A DNA stretch of 62,944 bases, filler included, from Parasitella parasitica NRRL 2501 (GCA_025201805.1; 11 parts of 11 records of this genome joined end to end with filler, not necessarily neighbours in it), one strand, 5' to 3'. Shown: positions 32,076 through 46,026, counted from the whole stretch's first letter. The notes: generated from the letters alone by a model not told the origin. Numbers and translations are program-made.

Positions 32076-32800
32076 TGACGAAAAGTCGAAAGGATACTTC
32101 TACTTCTTGCTCTGAAGAGGAATCCTTTAAAAACAGAAACGGTGAAGATACATGTTAATATCTGATCAAAACGTTACTAATTGAAGCTATGATGGTAGAC
32201 ATATACGAAGAAATTATAACCGATGATTTAGACGATGATTTTCACCCATCTGTAGCCTTTAGAAAAAGAAGTAACTATTATCACATTATATTCATAAGTA
32301 CTGAAGAGTTAAAGCATTTTATACACCCATTACATAGGTAAAAAAAAAGCGGCAATTCTGCAAGAAAGAAGGCCAAAGACGAGATTGGTAGCACAAGCAA
32401 GATCGGCTTTCTTGACACCAATGCTCAAAGTCCAATGATAGTTGAATCAAACAAGACTACGCGACTACGCAACCTGATAGTTTCATGAATGTGCCCACTG
32501 TTACTGCTTCCAAGTCTGACTCTACTGCTACCAAACCTGGTTCGACAACGAAAAGCTTTGATGATAAAACAAGAAAAAAGGTGATGACAGTGAAAACGAC
32601 TATCAAAAATATGTGGAAACCAAAAAAAAATTGCAGCCATTGTATAATCTAGTGAATGCTATTCATACAGTCATCACTCACACATTTGCTTTCCCAAAAT
32701 ACATGTTTTTAAAAGAACTGGCCAAAAACAGCAATTTCAACTTGAATGAATTTGTACGAAAAGAATTCTTTGTGGAACTGAATATTCTTCATTTGTTCGT
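32076..32800 (+). pseudogene. Fanzor1-like N-terminal remnant, truncated and frameshifted
   Basis: TVKTTIKNMWKP...LYNLVNAIHTVITHTFAFPKYMFLKEL parallels VIKTKLEAML...VHRVVRHLSDVTYAASLFLNWFCL of the 34-36 kb gene; no RuvC present. Confidence 0.55.
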
Positions 32801-33204
32801 ATAATTTTTTAAGCCAGATCACAAAAGAGAGAGTGTGTGCACTTGTTTCTCAATGTTGTGGTCACATTATAATAACTATTGTTTCCCATAGTAGGATACA
32901 TGTTTTTGTCTCCTCGATTACATAGATATATGTCATATTATATGGCTTCATTTTTCAAATTTCCAAGAATCAAGTTCAAGTAAATTAAAACAATTGATTA
33001 AACATTTAGAAGAAAAGAAAAAAAATGAGCGAAATATAATGCGAGTCTCAAGTATCTTGTCATGATTTAAATTAAAAGCAAGTGCTGAAAAATTAATTAA
33101 AGATTACATGTGAGTAAAAGAGAAATTCCATGGTTCATTGACATATATAGACTCGTGCATATGATATCGAAGGTACATGATGGTCAATTTGATATTTTCT
33201 CTTA

Positions 33205-36200
33205 CAGTCGACGAAACTAGGTTGGTCATTTTAAAATTGAATTTGGACGTCGCAATGAAAGTGAGACACCAGTATGAAAATGGGACAGCAATATGAAATT
33301 GGGACGCCAGTATGAAAATGGAACAGCAATAAGGACATATTAGTTTTTGGACCAATCAAACTTTTTTTTTTCAATAGGCNNNNNNNNNNNNNNNNNNNNN
33401 NNNNNNNNNNNNNNNNNNNNNNNNNNNNNNNNNNNNNNNNNNNNNNNNNNNNNNNNNNNNNNNNNNNNNNNNNNNNNNNNNNNNNNNNNNNNNNNNNNNN
33501 NNNNNNNNNNNNNNNNNNNNNNNNNNNNNNNNNNNNNNNNNNNNNNNNNNNNNNNNNNNNNNNNNNNNNNNNNNNNNNNNNNNNNNNNNNNNNNNNNNNN
33601 NNNNNNNNNNNNNNNNNNNNNNNNNNNNNNNNNNNNNNNNNNNNNNNNNNNNNNNNNNNNNNNNNNNNNNNNNNNNNNNNNNNNNNNNNNNNNNNNNNNN
33701 NNNNNNNNNNNNNNNNNNNNNNNNNNNNNNNNNNNNNNNNNNNNNNNNNNNNNNNNNNNNNNNNNNNNNNNNNNNNNNNNNNNNNNNNNNNNNNNNNNNN
33801 NNNNNNNNNNNNNNNNNNNNNNNNNNNNNNNNNNNNNNNNNNNNNNNNNNNNNNNNNNNNNNNNNNNNNNNNNNNNNNNNNNNNNNNNNNNNNNNNNNNN
33901 NNNNNNNNNNNNNNNNNNNNNNNNNNNNNNNNNNNNNNNNNNNNNNNNNNNNNNNNNNNNNNNNNNNNNNNNNNNNNNNNNNNNNNNNNNNNNNNNNNNN
34001 NNNNNNNNNNNNNNNNNNNNNNNNNNNNNNNNNNNNNNNNNNNNNNNNNNNNNNNNNNNNNNNNNNNNNNNNNNNNNNNNNNNNNNNNNNNNNNNNNNNN
34101 NNNNNNNNNNNNNNNNNNNNNNNNNNNNNGGCGTGCATCAGCATTGGCTTGATCGTGTTTAGCTCTTTTAATTATAGCAGACTTGAATCCACAAAGTTGA
34201 TAATATTCGCCAGTAGAAGTTTTGCGTATTCTATGTCTTTGCCTATCCTGACCAGCACCAGTACCCACACCATCAGAAGCAACAAAAATATCACGTATCC
34301 CAGGATCCAGTCCCCATATAGTAGCAGTATTCATATCGATTTCGGTTGCAATATCAGCAGGCGTCAAAGCAGCTTCGGCAGCAACAGAAGGTCGGTCACA
34401 GATAAACTCTAGTGCAATACCATCAGTACGAATAGCACCGGTGAATCTCGTGTCTGATAACGCCTTTCCATCAAGGTCGTTTCTTGTGCGAAAACCAATA
34501 CGACTCATATCAAAGAGGCTCCAGCATACATCTTTCATATCTTCATTGGCTGCTACCGGTGGCCATATTCTTGATTGTTTGATTATTCTGTTAATGCCTG
34601 AAAGATTTATTTGAATAAATCGTTGCTGAAGAGCGTATATCGGCAGGATATTAAACAGACGAGCACCACGAGGATCAGTATACTGCTCAGGTCTGAATTC
34701 TTCCCTAGAGATAGAGGCTTTTGTCCTAGCTACAAAGGCATCAATCGCAGTCTTCTCTTGTGGAAGTAAATCATTGTGTCTTTGTCTCTGGATTGGATCA
34801 GCTGCACGGTTATGCCTTTGTGTGTCTTCAAGAAATGAATGGTTATGTATTGCTGGATGGTAGGGTGCTCCAAATTTATCGAATCTTTAACGTGAGTTTC
34901 TAAGGTGCTCCGGAATCGTCTTGGCAGCTTTCTAAAGTCAACAATTTCTGCTAGTTGACGATGAACAAATCCCTTTGTGGCTCTTGTTTGGGGCACTGGC
35001 TCGCGAATAGTAATTTGCTGTTCCATTCTTTCTAAAACATGGTATCCATGGTAAATACAAGTGAGGCTGAGCATAGTAGTCTTCTTCAGTCAGGTTCAAG
35101 CCACGCAATCTTTGACGACACTCTTGAAGAAGATTGTTGATGGAGGTTCTGTGGGCGTCGGTAACTTCCAGGTTAGCAGGATAAGTCATCTCTTGATTGG
35201 TAGTAAGAGCGTTATACACCCGCTCAGCTAAGTCGCGTTTGACACCAGTTCGGAAAGGGAGATTTGGAAATTCAGTTGTGTCAGAAAGCCTCGTAAAGAG
35301 ATAGCGCACCGTTTTTGGCTTAAAATTGGTTCCCACATGATTCTCTACAAGAATCTCGTAGGTACGCATAACTATTGTAATTAACGTGCTGTATTGAATG
35401 TTGGGGAACAGTTGCTGTCTATTGAAATCTTCTCCCATGGCAGTGGCAAATTCTGTAAAAGCTTCACTGATATCAGCATCGGCATTCTTTCCTTGGCCAA
35501 CAAATAAAGCTGCAAAGTTGTACAGTCTTTTGTGAGTTAGTTTGGGTACAGCCTCTCCGTTTCTCAAGAGCCTCAGACAGAACCAGTTCAGAAATAATGA
35601 AGCTGCATAAGTAACATCACTGAGATGACGAACAACGCGATGTACTTCTGTTATAAAGCCAGTTCTTTGGTATTGATTGAAGTCTTCAACCCTTAGCATA
35701 GCTTCCAGTTTCGTTTTGATTACAAACTTTGTTCTCCTAGTTCTTGGACCAACGACTTCAGCCTCTTCTGTTGCAACATTGGGATTTCTTTTAGATTTAG
35801 TAGTGGAAGATTTTTGTCGAGCTTTCCTCTTTACTTCAGAACGCGCTTGTTTTATTTTGACTTTCTCGGATAGGTACACTGGGGTACTAGAGGATTCACT
35901 AGGTGTACTTGGAGTGAGACTGACAGCCTTTTTAAACTCTTGTGACATTCCTGTATTAAACTTAAAAGAGTATTTAGTAAAAACTCAAAGTATAGTTCAT
36001 TTTAGGTATTGGCATACCTGTAGATTGAGTGGAAGCTTGTACAGGAGTAGTAACTGAGGTTGTTGCGCGAGTAGTACGAGGTCGAATAACAATAGGCTCT
36101 TGAAAGTCATCATCTTCTTCGAAATCAGCAATAACAGTGGAACGAGCAATTTGAGGGGTTTGGCGTACGTTGGTAGAAGAACTAGATTCACCGGACTCAG

Positions 36201-37587
36201 CGACACCCTGTCTTTGTAAAGACAATCTTGTTGCTTCTTCGATATCGCGCTGTTCTTTGGCTGTTGTGGAAGGAGGAGGACGGAGAACGATTGGAACTTG
36301 AAAGTCTTCATATTCTTCATCTTCAAAAAAGTCAGCAGGAATACTTGAAGCAACATCCTTGGCTAAAGCAACGTTGGTATTATTAGTTTTATTGGTGTCT
36401 TTTTCAGTATATAAATACTTAGCATACCTTTCTCTTTTCCCTTCTTTTTTCTTGGTTCAGAATCCCCAGCACCTTTGTTTCCAGAAGAATCCAAAAGTAT
36501 ACAGTTAGACTTTAAACTAAATACTTTACCTGGCTTTCTTTTTGGAGGCATTTCAGTACGCTTTGTCTGAACTAATAAAAGATAAAAAAAAAAAATAGAA
36601 CGAGAAGCGTACTAGAGATATCTATTTTTCAACTCTATCATGGCGCCAAGCTTTCAATTGATATATTGATTGTGAAAGTAAAAAACAACCATGTTGTGAA
36701 ACAACTTTTTTGCTTTGTTTGTGTGAGTGAAATAGAGCATTTACTTTCATTATTCAGAGTATGAGGCGACTTTAACTATCCCTCCCTAACCTCTTCTTCA
36801 TTTTCTTATTTTAATTTAGATGCAATTTATCGTAATTGCGGTAATAAAGAAAAAAAAATTGGTTACAGGATCAAAGTTATTCACTCAATATCAATAAATG
36901 ATGGGTATCAGCATAAGTTATAAAGTAGAATTTAGGTTTTCATTTTATAGAATAGGTAGACTCAAAATAAAACAAAAACAATAAGAGAAAAAAAAGCAGT
37001 GAGTTAAATATAAGTGCCTGTGTGAGCTTTTATTAAGTTCCATCTGACTGAATAAATCTTTAGATCCAAGATCATGTCCTTTATATACATCAAACGCTGC
37101 TTATTATATGACTGAACAAATTCATATGAAATTATCAGCTTTTCTGATGCATTATTATCGCACCATTGGCACTTGTACTGAATTATAAGCCTACTATTAC
37201 AGAGTTTAAGCAATGACTCCAACAAAGACCTAATGACCTCATCTTTTCTAGAATTGATAAAAGCCCTGAGTTCTCTGTAGTATCATAGCATAGTATTCTG
37301 ATAGCCTATTTATTACTTTTCATGCTAGATATAATAGGACTATACCCTCTTGTTCACGCATTTGGCCAAAACTAGGCGTGTCTCAATATATTCTACTTTC
37401 ATGTTGATGTATCATTTCCATACTGACGTCTCATTTTTATAATCGTGTCCCAATTTCATACTGGTGTCCCAATTTCATATTGCTGTCCCATTTTCATACT
37501 GGTGTCCCACTTTCATTGCGACGTCCAAATTCAATTTTAAGATGACCCAAATTTTTTCTTAATGGCCCAACCTAGTTTCGTCGACTG
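33205..37587 (-). mobile_element. Tc1/Mariner-type TIR element carrying Fanzor1, no transposase seen
   Basis: Both ends read CAGTCGACGAAACTAGGTTGG inward; TA at 33203-33204 and 37588-37589; ~120-150-bp imperfect TIRs with repeated ~19-bp TATGAAA(A/T)TGGGAC units. Confidence 0.92.
34130..36551 (-). pseudogene. Fanzor1 gene, spliced, about two frameshifts, C-terminus in the N gap
   Basis: Introns 36363-36427 and 35951-36017 keep frame; LFNILPI, IRTDG, RuvC-I IWGLDPGIRDIFVASD and TSTGEYYQLCG; frame breaks near 35040 and 34.7-34.9 kb. Confidence 0.88.
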
Positions 37588-37599
37588 TAAACAGTCAAT

Positions 37600-37770
37600 A
37601 TAAATATGACTAGCCAATTTGATATTTTTAAGCTGAATGGCGAGGTGTTTGGCATTAATAACAGCCAAGTTGTCACTTTCAGAGTGTGAAAAAAGTAAGC
37701 TTCAGAGGCTTCTTGAAGAATCCCAATGCAGAGGATCGAAGAAATGTGTTCTCGAATCTTGACCAATTTC
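37600..37770 (-). pseudogene. Degenerate histone H3 C-terminal fragment
   Basis: IGILQEASEAY followed, after a frameshift, by DNLAVINAKHLAIQLKNIKLA, matching H3 LQEAxEAY...DTNLxAIHAKRVTIxPKDIxLA. Confidence 0.7.
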
Positions 37771-38334
37771 ATAACAAAACGTTAGGTATCAATAAATGTG
37801 TGATAACGACGGGTTTTACAAAAAGAGACAATGCGAGATTTGTACTCTATGAAATCCCTGAACAAAGTCAACTCATTACCATGATTCTAGGTTCACTCTT
37901 GGCTCGAGAAATATTTCCAGAACACGCATCTGGTCATGTTCTACGTTCATTTAAACACCGTAAGCACATCTGCGACAATAGGAATAGCAGTGTATTGTAT
38001 TCATCAAAAGCTCGAATACCAATTAAGCGCACAAAATTCCTATTAGATGTGGAAAGAAATCCGCTTTAATGATAACATTTTTTGGTTTCGAGATATTTAT
38101 CTCGATCTTTTAATAAATGATCGCACAATGATTTAATTGAACCTCAAATTTTATCAGTTTGTGATAATGAACGGTAATATGATTCTTTACCAATCAAGCG
38201 ACTCGTGGTATTATGTTAGATTTCTGTTTTACATTGATTGGGCGACAATCAATTAGTTGAAAACTCTCTTCTTTACTCTGAGGGTTCGCTTTTTTTTTTT
38301 CTTTTTCTATTTCGCGTCAAATACATACAAGAAA

Positions 38335-39963
38335 ATGGGTCGTAAGTGGGCAACACAAGATAATATAAATGGGGCTTTATGACTGAAACTATAATGCTCT
38401 AGTCCGGGTTCTTTACTTTTTGAAGCCGTTTATGGCTGCACTTCCCGAAATCGAGTCTCCAGTGCGCAAGGTAAGCTAAGTGTAGACAAAAACCGAGTTG
38501 CAAAACTTACAGTTCATAGGTTCCATTTAATGAAAAATTGCTCTACACTGTTATTGCACTTTTTGCCTATTTAGTGATGTCTCAACTTCCTCTTTACGGC
38601 ATCATCTCGAAGGATTCGTCCGATCCTTTTTACTTTTTACGTGATGTTCTTGCTTCTAATCGTGGTACTCTTACAGAATTGGGTGTTCTCCCTATTCTCA
38701 CTTCTGGTATGATTATGCAATTCATGGCTGCTTCCAATATCATTCATGTTGATTACAGCTTGAAGGAAGACCGCGCTTTGTTTTGTGGTGCTCAAAAATG
38801 TAAGTCTTATAGTTCAGGGAGACATACAAACAGATAGAAATAGAGAGGATAAGGATCAGTGATTGATTTCAATGTGATTAGTATTCGCCGTTTTGATTTC
38901 TATCGGTCAAGCTGTTGCTCTTGTTTTCACCGGTCTCTATGGTAACCCTAATGAAATTGGCGCTGTTCGTTGTGGTCTTTTGATCCTTCAAATTGTCTTT
39001 GCCTCCTCAGTCACCATGTTATTAGATGAATTGCTGCAAAAGGGATATGGTCTTGGTTCTGGTATCAACATTTTCGTCGCTGCCAAGGTATGTCAATCCA
39101 TTTTCTGGAAATCCATGTCCTTTGCTACTATTTCTACTATTCGTGGCCCCGAGAAAGAAGGTGCACTTGTTTCGCTTTTCAGTTTGATCATGTCGCGCAA
39201 GGATAAGGCTCGTGCCCTTAAAGATGCTTTTTATCGAGATGATGCAACTAATGTAATGAGCTTCATTGCAACTCTTCTCATGTTTGGTATCGTCATTTAC
39301 GTTCAAGGTTTCCGTGTTGAGCTTCCTGTCAAGTCCAACCGTATGCGAGGTCAGCGTGGTGCGTATCCTATCAAGTTTTTTTATACTTCAAGCATGCCTA
39401 TTATGCTCCAATCTGCATTATTTGCCAACATTTTTTTAATTTCTCAAACTCTTTTCCTTTTCTTTGGCGACAATGTTCTTGTTCGCATTCTCGGCGCTTG
39501 GGAACATCTTGCTGATTCTAATCAACTCGTTGCTGTTGGTGGTATTGCTTACCATCTCTCTGCTCCTCGCAGTTTAACCGAAGCTGTCTTCAGCCCCGTT
39601 CGCACTGTTCTTTATGTCAATATCACAATGATTGTTTGCGCTTACATGTCCAAAATGTGGGTTGAGATCTCTGGCTCTACTTCTCGTGATGTTGCCAAGA
39701 CACTCAAGGACCAACAACTTGCTATTGCTGGTTTCCGTGATGCGTCCATGTACAAGGAATTACAGAGAGTAATCCCTGTTGCCTCTAGCTTTGGTGCTGT
39801 TTCTTTAGCAATCATTGCATCTGGCGCAGATATGCTCGGTGCTATCGGATCGGGCGCCGGTATTTTGATGAGTGTCATGATCATCTTCCAATACTTTGAA
39901 ATGTTTGTTAGAGAACAAATGGAAGGTAATATGACCATGGATGCTATGATGGCTGGGCAATAA
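38335..39963 (+). CDS. SEC61: Sec61 translocon alpha subunit or a paralog (4 exons)
   Basis: [47 protein letters not shown] and [10 protein letters not shown] motifs; short GT-AG introns near 38342, 38471 and 38800. Confidence 0.93.
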
Positions 39964-41038: not shown

Positions 41039-41277
41039 TACTGATAGAGTAAATGAGCTATGAGACCAAATGAAAGCCACAATATTAAGACCGTTAATAA
41101 AAAATAGCACGAAGAGTAATTGCATACGTACCGACAAAAGAGATGGTTATGTTAATGTTGTAAAAAAATTATATAAAAGAAAAAGAGGAGGAGTTTCTGA
41201 TAGTAATATGCTTTATAGAGTTTCTGAATTTACCGAATATAGCCCTCATCGAGGGTAGGCTTATACTCTTTTCTTGT

Positions 41278-41716
41278 TCAGAAAGACATCAGCAAGTTTG
41301 TTGAAAAATTGGTTTTTGGGTCGAAGGATGGAAATGTCACGCCGAAGACGAGTTGGGCCACACCTGCCAAACCGATCGCAAGTGCACTGAGAGTGTCTTT
41401 ATTGCGAGTGTTGTGGGCAGACTTGACAGAAAGTCTTTTTTGACACAAATGAATGCACCTTTGACTGTCTTGACTTGGGTTTGGTCGTTGTCTCGTACGA
41501 CACGTGAAGGGTGAGAGAGCTTACAAAAGCAGTATGGGCAAGTCTGGGATGTACTATGCTCGTTTGTGTAAAGTTCTGTAGAATACAGGCTATTCTTTTT
41601 GGGCTTCCAGTGACCACCATAACGCAAAAAGCCTTTCGTTAGTGAACCGATACCAAGTCCGCGATCACCTACAAACATAACAAGGCGCTTGAGCCTTTTG
41701 TCTTCTTCGTCGATGC
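41278..41716 (-). pseudogene. Fanzor C-terminal remnant (RuvC-II, zinc finger, RuvC-III region), frameshifted
   Basis: MFVGDRGLGIGS...YTNEHSTSQTCPYC...VKGAFIC, then KDTLSALAIGLAG...FPSFDP in another frame. Confidence 0.8.
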
Positions 41717-42055
41717 TGTTTTAATATACGAAATAGATATACAATTAAAACTGGATATATTTATTCGTATATAAAAAATAAGATGATTCTTCTATCCACA
41801 ACATTTGTCTAGACTATTTATACTTTTCGAGTACTAAGATCGGTTACATGATCGTAGAATCGAGGCTTAATAAACTTGCACCAGATAGAACCAATTATCA
41901 GCCATGTGTTGCTAGTACAAGTAATCGTAAACCAGTTATTACCATAAGGAGCGAGGAAGGAGAGTGGTCTCGAGAAAGAGTATAATAGCCTTTTGGTATA
42001 AAGGATTCCTAATGAGTGTAACCACGGTATAATACTTTTGCATAATTGTGGGAAT

Positions 42056-42791
42056 TGTTGTGCCAGGTCTTGAAAATGAGCACAGCAGGTGATTGTATGT
42101 GATATAAAAATATAAGAATGTAATAAAGACTTAGTTTACCAGATACAAAACTATTGATTTATTGATTGACAAGAAGCTGTCTATTTATATTAGAATAAAT
42201 CTGATGTATCAATTCTAAAACCGGATGTCAATATAATATAAACTCATACTGAAGAGTAAAACATCAGATCATAAAATAATATGACATGACATTTGGGATA
42301 GATACAATCTACCCTATCTCCCGGATCTCATCACTAAAACTTTTATCCTCACATCGCTTCCCTCAGTTCATAGAAAGTATATAAACCCTCTATTTTTGAA
42401 TGTAATAAACGGATCTTCACCTGATTAATTTCTACTTAAACTTTTCTGATAAATCAAAATCTATCTAAATCAATCTATAAAATACAGTCAGGTCATGTTT
42501 GACATTTAATTGTCAAACAAGATTATAACACAGTAGTAGTCAGAGCAAGACCTATTTCTATATTTAATCAGCTAATCGTTATGAATGTGAATCATTCATC
42601 GATAAGTTGAGCTTCGCAATTTAGAATAAGTAGAACCCAAATAGATGGTTTCTTATACAAGACATTCTATTGAATACTTCTATTTACTAGATAGAATAAT
42701 TGATGCCATTTAACCTTAGATCCGATCAGGAACGGTTGCCATGACAACTGGGTTGAAATAGTGGTAACCATGGTATTCTATGGATACAACA
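42056..42791. mobile_element. Solo LTR with nested family A solo LTR (42202-42456)
   Basis: Outer TGTTG...CAACA with TSD GGAAT; inner TSD AAATC. Confidence 0.88.
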
Positions 42792-42967
42792 GGAATACCC
42801 AAGTTGGATCTCAGGCACAACACCTCGCTTAGCCTTTACATCCTAAACATGTCCAATGATGTGATGTGATACGCTTGTGTAAATTGGAGAATAAAGTCTC
42901 TGTTTCAAATCAAGAAGGTTATTCCTGTAAGTAACACAGATCTGAGCATCAGGATAAAGATTAAGAC

Positions 42968-43696
42968 TGTTTAGGATACAGATCAAATCTTAGCGGTAAT
43001 GTATTATACTCTGTATAATACATCATAAAGCGAGCATGAGTAGAAATGCGTAGTAGAATGGAATGACTTTATTTAGACATGGCAAAGAGACATAAGTGGT
43101 AACATTGAATGGCGAATCTTTATCCCAGTACAAAGTGGTGATATCCTATGACATTTGGTTCCTGAGGTCGGTGTTTAATCCTGATGAATGTTCTTCCATC
43201 AAAGCTACCAGGAACAACATTCTATCCTTTATACGTATCTATGCTCTTGTCTTACTGGTAACTCGGAAACTCTTATCCACCAAGCTCCTAGGGATTGGTT
43301 CAAGGTGTACCCAATTATCCCTCATCCTAGATCATGGTCCTATTGCTGCGGCACTGTCAAATAATTATAAATACCTTCAAAACATACACTAGTTTAAATC
43401 TTCATTCAATCTTGGAATAGCAAAATAAATATATTCAGTTCTAATTGTTATGTCAAAAGTCTGATAAAATAAATCTGCCAAAGAATTACACCTTTATTCA
43501 TAATACATCTCTCGATGTATTATATACACATTCATTACACTAGGGTTCTACTGTCTAGCTGCATAATGTAAATCATGACTACCCATGATTTACTGTAAGA
43601 CCCTGGGACTGATCTGAGATCCTGATGTGAGACTTTGCCATGTTATTGATATAACACTAATTGTATTTTTCTGGCTATATTTTGTTATTCTAAACA
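42968..43696. mobile_element. Solo LTR family H inside a family E LTR, containing a family D solo LTR (43446-43656)
   Basis: TGTTTAG...CTAAACA with TSD AAGAC; inner TGTTAT...ATAACA with TSD CTAAT. Confidence 0.9.
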
Positions 43697-43929
43697 AAGA
43701 CACTGTCAGATCAAAGACGTGTAGCCCTTGCTGTATAACCTCATATCGTACCCTGTCAAGTAGATTGTCACTGCAAATTAGCCTTGTCAATTAATAATCT
43801 AAATAAGTCACCATAAATTTATGTAGCTGTAAAAAGTATAAATAGCAAATGCAATTTCGATCTTAAATAAAGTATCTTTAAGTTTTCGTATCTCCTTAAC
43901 ATTTGGTTATTATCTTTTTTGATTCAGCA

Positions 43930-45785
43930 TATGCGCTTAAACAGGCCTGGAGACCGCTCTCCCTTCTCTCGCCAAAGTCTTCCAGCTTTGAGAATCTCAA
44001 TCTGGGCATACTCTCTTCCTGCAATTGGTGGAGTAGCGTGGAAAAAATGGCAGTGTTCTTGTAGTCTCGCAGTATCCGATTGCGCTTGGATAGTAGTTTC
44101 TTGATTGTCTTGTGAAGCCAGGAGGTGCGGCCCAGTTGGAAGTGTTTGGTGAAGAGAGCGACCTCTTGCTTCAATTCATCCCAAAAGAGGTACGCAGTAT
44201 AATCCGGCGAATCAGCAGTAAGATCAAGTGGTCTGTGCATGTCAAACAAATGTTGAATGCGATCATTCAGTCCCTGGCGAAAAGTTGGTACCTTTGCTAA
44301 AAAGGGTTGGCCTTCCAGTTGCCTGGTCCGCGCCCGTTGCCTTGAATGTTGACAGTGACAGAGAGTAGCGAGTGGTCAGTCCAAGCATAAGGGACAGGTT
44401 CCAAGTTGGTGAAGCATACTTGAGAGTGGTAGTAGTCGGAACAGTAGATGTAGTCCAACCACTTACGGACTCCTTGAGTGCTCAGGAAAGTGGGTAGTGG
44501 GCTTTCCTTGAGGAAATCGACAAAGTAGCCTTGTAGTAACCAGAGCCATGCGTTATAGTGGCTGGGCAGGTTGTCTGAGATGTTGTAATTGAAGTCGCCA
44601 AGAATAAAGACAGGGACTTCTGGTTGTTGTAAAGTGTTTCGAATGGCACTGTTCGCAGCAAGTTCAGCAAAGAGTGGGCATCGCAATTTGGGTGCTGCCG
44701 GAGCATAGATACCAAGTATATGGGCAATGGGTGAGGACGCATTGGCAGTAGATTTGATGCTAGTAAGAATGTATCGGCCATCCGGACCAGTAAGGGTAGG
44801 AGGCGAAATGATGACAAACTCAGCAGGGTTGACGGAAACGATGCCACAGTAATGCGTCCAAGTAGACGATTTGGCTTGGAACATCGTGTTCAGGCGGTCC
44901 TGTTGTCGCTCATTGACCAAGTTGGTTTCCTGGACAACAAAGATGTCGTTATCTGTGTGACGGAGGTAACGGAGGAAGGGTGAGATAGCAGATGGGTTGT
45001 GAAGTTTCACCAGGCTGCGAGAGTTCAGCGTGGCGAGGTGGAGAGTGGTGTTGTCACCCTTCTCTATAATCGAGGGGCGGTGGTAGCCTTGCGACTCGCG
45101 CTAGAGCTATCAGCAGAGCTGTCTCTGCCAGCCTGCTCTCGCTGGTAGAGAACCAACTCCATGGATGAGGGTTTCAACTGTTTGGCATCCGGTGGTGAGT
45201 TGCTCTCGTTGGCGGCATCGCTATCAGATCGGCCGCGTTTGGGCTTACCAATGCTGGTATCTTGCATAGGCAAAGCTGTATCAAAGATGGGCCCAGTGAA
45301 GGTTGCCTTTTGCTTCCCCTTGTCATTAGCAGTAGGGCGGGAAGGTTGCGAGGCTGGGACGCCGTTTTTCTGGTATACGAATGGTGCAGGAGAGGATGAG
45401 GTGCCAGTGGTATTGCTAATAGAAGATGCAGGTTTAGTGGGAGAATTCTCCTTGATAGTGCTCGAAGAAGCGGGCTTCTTGGACGATTTACGAGGTTTCA
45501 TCTCGGCGACAGTAACCACCTTGCTGTGTATGTTGCTCGGGAAATTGTTGCGGGAGCACTGCTTGCTGAGGTGACCATGCTCATTGCAAGTGTGGCAGAT
45601 CATCAGGTTACGGAGTTTCGCACAGTCAGCTTTACAGTGGTCAAGGCTACTTTGACAATAGCGACAATATTGAGGCATATCGTCCCATTTGAGCAGCAGC
45701 TTTCTGTCTTCCTCTGCCCAAGGAAGTTCACGAGAAAGCTTCTCCGTAATAGGTTGAGGACTGTTGAGATCTGCAAGATCGAAAT
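43930..45785 (-). mobile_element. L1-clade LINE fragment: ORF1 knuckles plus APE endonuclease, RT missing
   Basis: CRYCQSSLDHCKADC and CHTCNEHGHLSKQC; DIFVVQET, GIYAP, ILGDFN, LDYIY, WTDH and GPGNWKANP. Confidence 0.92.
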
Positions 45786-46026
45786 AAGAAAAGTATAATA
45801 TAAAACGTTGAATTAACGAGATAAGAAAACTTGAGATTACTTTATTAAAGATTCAACTTTGCATCTGCTATTTATACTTTTTACAACAACATAAATTTTT
45901 GGTGACTTATTTAAAATACTAGTCGANNNNNNNNNNNNNNNNNNNNNNNNNNNNNNNNNNNNNNNNNNNNTTAATTAATTAANNNNNNNNNNNNNNNNNN
46001 NNNNNNNNNNNNNNNNNNNNNNNNNN

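Follow-up and report, generated by a model that had tools for sequence, protein, structure and literature searches.

A decayed Fanzor1 element of Parasitella parasitica with a predicted spliceosomal intron in its omega-RNA

The window analysed here, a stretch of 62,944 nucleotides from the Mucorales fungus Parasitella parasitica NRRL 2501 (GCA_025201805.1) in which 11 parts of 11 records are joined end to end with filler, contains at positions 33205-37587 a decayed, non-autonomous cut-and-paste element that almost certainly carries a Fanzor1 gene. As an element it is ordinary; its interest lies in a spliceosomal intron that we predict, from sequence and in silico folding, within its omega-RNA, the guide RNA of the Fanzor. 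This intron seems to us moderately probable and would leave a scaffold of 52 nt.

The element (4.4 kb) is flanked by TA dinucleotides at 33203-33204 and 37588-37589 and bounded by repeated terminal inverted repeats (TIRs) of about 140 nt; the gene, its TIRs, the flanking motif and all RNA features named below are given on the minus strand. Both the right TIR, 3' of the gene (33205-33334), and the left TIR, 5' of it (37446-37587), contain 19-nt subrepeats. Their arms share 113 nt at 91% identity plus a perfect tip of 22 nt and can be aligned over about 125-145 nt, and a 21-nt block near 33225, present in the left TIR and in sister copies, is missing from the right one. TA was present at all 18 of the 18 ends compared, and TIRs with TA occur at no fewer than nine distinct sites. 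No transposase remnant was seen in the 5' non-coding region (36552-37445): no stop-free stretch in the 5' kilobase of the element exceeds 92 aa, the 5' region of seven copies holds no long frame that could encode a DDD/DDE transposase, pieces of the window copy gave no Pfam match, and scans of metagenomes and viruses, with no fungal genomes among them, yielded no autonomous partner with the same TIRs. A preliminary description of this DNA had already noted the matching termini, the TA duplications, the internally repeated TIRs and the lack of a visible transposase, all of which we recovered. Its term "mariner-type" fits the TA and the CAG ends, the two features behind a putative assignment to the Tc1/mariner superfamily, but finds no counterpart in a transposase of any copy. 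The element resembles non-autonomous Tc1/mariner elements in its TA duplication, CAG...CTG ends and TIRs with internal repeats, and differs from them in that no copy seen has a DDD/DDE transposase.

Homologs were found in Mucor, Parasitella, Umbelopsis, Cokeromyces, Benjaminiella, Pilobolus, Thamnidium and other genera; loci L002, L003, L004, L005, L006, L010 and L011 have both TIRs, L007 and L012 have one, and L001 is a 3' gene half. The nearest copy, L002 of Mucor circinelloides, is 92% identical over 3.2 kb, and every copy examined is broken. In L001, L002, L003 and homologs, a RuvC-II Glu stands beside a C4 zinc finger and is followed by RD (RuvC-III), a stretch that falls in an assembly gap in the window copy; the pattern agrees with the Fanzor definition in PMC3627910. 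Family profiles matched SpuFz1 (E=8e-5 and 5e-7) and also aligned with GtFz1. When exons and pieces were searched separately, phmmer of single pieces against PDB gave only a weak match to GtFz1 (E=0.76), and a Pfam scan of the element pieces gave none. Foldseek with a model of the C-terminal 404 aa of a homolog placed Fanzors at ranks 1-8 (E=1.6e-6), followed by Cas12f and TnpB; against this stands the poor quality of the model, with a predicted template modelling score (pTM) of 0.47 and VIA-align Z below 5.3, and an earlier model (pTM 0.33) was unusable. Because the sister motifs, the SpuFz1 profile matches and the first eight Foldseek ranks all point to Fanzors, we hold it as nearly certain that the family is a Mucorales-type Fanzor1, in line with the earlier proposal of a Fanzor1 in a TA-duplicating TIR element, which is non-autonomous. 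Membership in the PpFz1/ROr-1 clade was ruled out by the lack of any phmmer or profile match to PpFz1. Three family motifs were not found in the accessible portion of the catalogue files of PMC3627910 (2013), and this is apparently a Mucorales Fanzor1 TIR family without a catalogue entry.

The 3' RNA region of the sisters holds the evidence for the intron. Behind the stop codon lies an 8-bp hairpin with a 6-nt loop (stem-loop 1, SL1), with 94% column identity, 97.5% of cells paired and two compensatory pairs; an Rfam search of the region gave no match. Fourteen bases after SL1, five of the seven sisters keeping the region have a donor, RG|GTAAGT, a motif whose background in the loci is 0.028 per kb and which is absent at the left ends. 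An acceptor AG stands 14 nt before the end in seven of eight sisters and in the window copy, and no other AG occurs over the 100-150 nt leading up to it in seven of eight copies, the window copy included (p=0.015-0.054 per copy, the copies not being independent); a branch-like motif varies among copies. In the window, the visible part of the predicted intron covers 33217-33379, with the acceptor AG at 33218-33217, a branch-like ACTAAT at 33344-33339 and no AG between them, and comparison with L002 would put the donor about 8 nt inside the gap. Joining donor and acceptor would give the 52-nt scaffold, in which TACAG at the end of exon 1 pairs with the terminal CTGTA (SL2, 7 bp with its neighbours). 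SL2 is kept in all seven sisters with wobble changes only, at a pairing probability of 0.99-1.0, and when exon joins of the sister loci were folded in silico, no other GT-AG join was as stable per base as the predicted one in the four copies that retain both sites intact. The second scaffold exon, 33203-33216, would consist of the last 12 nt of the element plus the TA at 33203-33204 as the predicted last two bases of the scaffold, and would form the 3' strand of SL2. For comparison, SL1 measures 7 bp in the solved Fanzor1 RNAs, and the two from fungi have one SL2 ahead of the guide. The end-spanning omega-RNA of the preliminary description keeps its TA and its flank-derived guide in our model but loses its continuity, as the splice signals probably make two exons of it. 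One Parasitella copy (L001, 8690-8700) ends almost exactly at the predicted splice donor, without a right TIR.

We also compared by eye the sequences of other Mucorales families given in the supplements of PMC3627910. In ROr-1, ROr-3 and PBl-2 there is a hairpin, the exon ends in TACAG(T) before a GT donor, and the acceptor stands 8-12 nt short of the end; once joined as predicted, TACAG and CTGTA pair here too. The helix of ROr-2 is long and spans two junctions, while MCi-1 and PBl-1 fit the layout of hairpin, donor and acceptor more weakly. No such donor is present in SPu-1, which is known to have a contiguous RNA. A literature search, weak on subscription journals, found no report of spliced Fanzor RNAs.

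Several observations weigh against an intron. The case draws on sequence and folding; the counts come from related copies and are not independent; both compensatory pairs of SL1 come from one distant sequence, L008; and the donor and SL1 of the window copy fall in the gap. The donor is mutated in L006 and L012, the acceptor in L011, and the region is deleted in L003; since the sisters are all broken, their splice signals are decaying as well. The acceptor is a piece of TIR sequence that both ends share, and in the unspliced RNA the donor region pairs with the TIR (duplex of -8 to -17 kcal/mol, terminal helix probability 0-0.82). Moreover, PpFz1 was published to cleave DNA in vitro with an unspliced RNA. 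With these points counted in, a spliceosomal intron within the omega-RNA, with a 52-nt spliced scaffold, is still the reading that we favour, by a modest degree of belief. The same duplex leads to a rival view, in which the omega-RNA stays unspliced at 210-290 nt; what looks like a donor would then be an inner, degenerate copy of the TIR tip, and its pairing with the real end would loop the repeats out. Known omega-RNAs do reach 150-230 nt, and the terminal helix forms in the unspliced RNA with a probability of up to 0.82; in three sisters, however, this probability is 0.00-0.07 unspliced and about 1.0 after joining. An unspliced RNA would also leave unexplained both the AG-free zone and why, in six unrelated families with different TIRs, the helix breaks exactly at GT and AG, and we consider it unlikely, although worth keeping in mind.

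The flanks of the element carry a one-sided signal. The base before the TA is T in nine of nine left ends versus three of nine right ends (Fisher p=0.009; binomial 2e-5 for the left ends against a background of 0.305), and position -4 is A or T in eight of nine left flanks, with nothing common further out; the copies being related, these counts are not independent. The alignment of insertion flanks thus bore out the expectation that a conserved flank would be found at the 37588 side only. In contrast, the 5'-GTTTA-3' read earlier as the end of the transposon-adjacent motif (TAM) did not hold for the family, since position -4 and beyond vary and the nine left ends share TTA alone; a four-base TTAA duplication was ruled out by the unbiased right flank. 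The TAM therefore probably contains TTA, with the left TA duplication and the conserved T (37588-37590) as the candidate 5'-TTA-3' in the window. The left-only TTA could instead reflect an oriented target choice by the transposase, or the T could be part of the element end. That view profits from the small number of sites, nine, but symmetric TIRs speak against it, as a dimeric transposase is not expected to give a one-sided preference. In Spu-1, moreover, the TAM consists of the bases conserved solely to the left of the 5' end, and the same one-sided flank equals the measured motif; we rate a transposase preference as improbable, to about the same degree as the unspliced RNA.

Because the constant part of five SpuFz1 RNAs ends in TA, with the variable guide after it, and because the review PMC13565253 counts the 3' duplication as scaffold, we place the TA in the scaffold and let the predicted guide begin at 33202, with about 15 nt of flank directly after the TA (33188-33202) by analogy with SpuFz1 RNAs. 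The preliminary description had the guide start with TA while also using TA in the TAM; an empty site has one TA, which was thus counted twice, and a guide of that form was abandoned. On the numbering adopted here, GTA precedes the guide match in a filled site, which would escape cutting. Since footprints of mariner-type excision would likewise read GTA, the likely targets would be alleles that were never filled or from which the element was excised precisely.

Two distinct Fanzor RNAs of P. parasitica produced in yeast both run from a hairpin through a linker to CAG|GTAAG and are almost identical beyond it; such a near-identical 3' part means that their "guide" is element sequence and not flank. 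For both there was no TAM in PMC10432273, and ATN was found later. Compared by eye, the published PpFz1 RNAs appear to end inside the predicted intron. We lean slightly towards the view that the omega-RNAs of Mucorales Fanzor1 have two or three exons and that what was published for PpFz1, both omega-RNA and structure, shows the form before splicing, in which intron sequence occupies the guide position. The opposite view, a short unspliced RNA that ends inside the element and bears a fixed internal guide as published for the yeast-made PpFz1 RNA, can point to a structure and cleavage obtained with such an RNA, but a fixed guide can neither mark each empty site nor explain the flank bias. Yeast splices non-consensus introns poorly, which also counts against it, and we find it very improbable.

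The Fanzor1 gene starts at an ATG at 36551 with a basic stretch resembling a nuclear localization signal (first exon(s), 36428-36551), in which ancestral intron 1 (36529-36491) has lost its AG plus 19 nt and is now read in frame in the window copy. It continues with intron 2 (36363-36427, 65 nt, GT-AG), a coding exon with an acidic, Ser/Thr-rich low-complexity region (36018-36362) that matches the annotated P0008 and P0120, intron 3 (35951-36017, 67 nt, GT-AG) and the main coding exon (34130-35950), which covers REC/WED and RuvC-I and contains the motif GLDPG (34299-34313, Asp codon 34307-34305). The low-complexity N-terminal extension and the RuvC-I motif had both been named before; the three-exon gene is right for the window copy before the gap, whereas the family has four exons there and a further intron beside the stop. 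The encoded Fanzor1 would, by arithmetic, have a length of about 985 aa. As for the frameshifts, about two of which had been suspected, 2 nt are missing at 35045-35046 (first stop next at about 34938) and 1 nt at 34844-34845; both deletions in this exon were scored against four sisters, and the stops lie between them. Hidden introns were ruled out as an explanation, as the sisters read through. Judged by its reading frame, the window copy is dead.

The assembly gap (33380-34129) separates this exon from the right end. Its two sides map in order and orientation onto the halves of single sister elements, either side being 92-100% identical to L002. The equivalent DNA measures 798 nt in L006 and 1155 nt in L002, or about 795 nt there without a nested insertion, and in the sisters it contains the RuvC-II Glu, the C4 zinc finger, RuvC-III, the last intron, the stop, SL1 and the splice donor; the three protein motifs among these are found there in sisters from five genera. 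Since both sides match single sisters in order and the equivalent length is similar, the element is likely to be continuous across the gap, with 750 N slightly short of the true length: the proposal that the gap is about the size needed for the three motifs agrees with the sisters as to the motifs and falls slightly short in length against about 798 nt. That the sides do not belong to one element, or that the catalytic half is absent from the gap, is scarcely credible given the ordered match, the 92-100% identity to L002 and 798 versus 750 nt, even with the gap sequence itself unread. The nested insertion in L002 (7625-7985) is an approximately 360-nt TGT...ACA insertion in the Fanzor gene with short inverted ends and a 5-bp duplication, like a solo long terminal repeat.

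Among known systems, SpuFz1/Spu-1 of Spizellomyces punctatus (PMC10432273, PMC11423790) is the best match in sequence and fold: it is a non-autonomous TIR element with a TA duplication and Fanzor1 only, with conserved bases only left of the 5' TA and with TA in the scaffold. Spu-1, however, is 2.1 kb long and intronless, with a 30-nt inverted repeat, a contiguous 75-nt scaffold and the TAM CATA, whereas the present family, at about 16% identity, has 4.4 kb, introns, repeated TIRs of about 140 nt, TTA and a predicted spliced scaffold of 52 nt. PpFz1, ROr-1/2/3, MCi-1 and PBl-1/2 (PMC3627910, PMC11423790) share with it the host group, the TA duplication (in most), long or repeated TIRs, spliced genes, an acidic N-terminal extension and, by eye, the 3' layout of hairpin, linker and donor; PpFz1 and its relatives differ in protein clade, TIR sequence and SL1 loop, and ROr-1, ROr-2 and MCi-1 encode a Mariner transposase. 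The accessible parts of these papers make no mention of RNA splicing. IStrons, which combine TnpB with a group I intron (10.1101/2023.11.20.567912, PMC13565253), resemble the family in that splicing and guide-RNA function overlap at the right end of a transposon. Unlike the present case, in which a spliceosomal intron inside the RNA would be required to build the guide RNA, they remove the whole element by self-splicing, in competition with the guide RNA.

Among the sister copies, Cokeromyces L004, L005 and L012 have common internal deletions (elements of about 2.3 kb) and keep the TIRs and the 3' RNA region, in likeness to the ghost elements of Spu-1. Umbelopsis copies (L003, L011) are about 80% identical to the window copy and L006 in coding DNA and 75-82% in 5' non-coding DNA, above the 73% of a SecY gene pair, and horizontal transfer is possible. 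That pair joins the SecY-family gene in L003 of Umbelopsis to a spliced host gene of the Sec61-alpha/SecY family in the window (38350-39963, plus strand, Pfam E=6e-49), possibly as paralogs. The flanks of the element (32800-33200 and 37590-38070, plus strand) resemble decayed coding sequence of another element that served as insertion target; an atlas search with the right-flank open reading frame (ORF) gave no match. A 14-nt direct repeat at about 33186 and 37616 brackets the insertion site. About 400 nt from the element, 32150-32800 (plus strand) holds what is left of the decayed 5' part of another Fanzor1 gene, the second here, which belongs to the PpFz1/ROr-1 clade and matches PpFz1 at 32613-32801 (E=1e-13). 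At 41260-41740 (minus strand), a 3' fragment of a third Fanzor1 (region of RuvC-II, zinc finger and RuvC-III), like the long MCi-7/ROr-4 type, has a weak Pfam TNB match and ends at a TIR-bounded insertion; the following 41741-43448 is a 1.7-kb non-coding stretch with 25-nt inverted repeats (92%) and TAT on either side. Finally, inverted repeats of about 115 nt at 43787-45926 surround a minus-strand fragment of a non-LTR retrotransposon with a zinc knuckle ORF and an endonuclease (Pfam E=2.5e-9), the right end being cut by the edge of the piece.

For intact copies, we propose an account that we find probable as a whole, though not strongly so. A transposase from elsewhere would mobilise the element, and an RNA polymerase II transcript would cross the gene and pass the right end. 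The spliceosome would remove the coding introns together with an intron of 156-240 nt covering most of the right TIR, thereby joining SL1 and the linker to the last 14 nt, where CTGTA would pair with TACAG as SL2. In the product, a scaffold of 52 nt would be continued by a guide of about 15 nt taken from the flank. With this RNA, Fanzor would cut empty alleles in which TTA precedes the guide match, and the element would be restored or spread when the filled allele serves for repair, while the filled site, where the element's own end offers GTA and not TTA, would be spared.

Without the splice, the element would be an unremarkable dead member of an uncatalogued Fanzor1 family whose TAM, TTA, can be predicted. 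Should the splice be real, the scaffold would be the smallest natural one among the Fanzors compared (52 nt versus 75-150 nt), the yeast-made Mucorales Fanzor RNAs that end inside the element, initially without a TAM, would be accounted for, and the way in which Fanzor enzymes must be programmed would change. Long transposase-binding TIRs would be kept in the DNA while a scaffold of about 50 nt is made in the RNA, and a guide RNA assembled by the spliceosome would be a solution, open to eukaryotes only, to the conflict between long TIRs and a compact scaffold.

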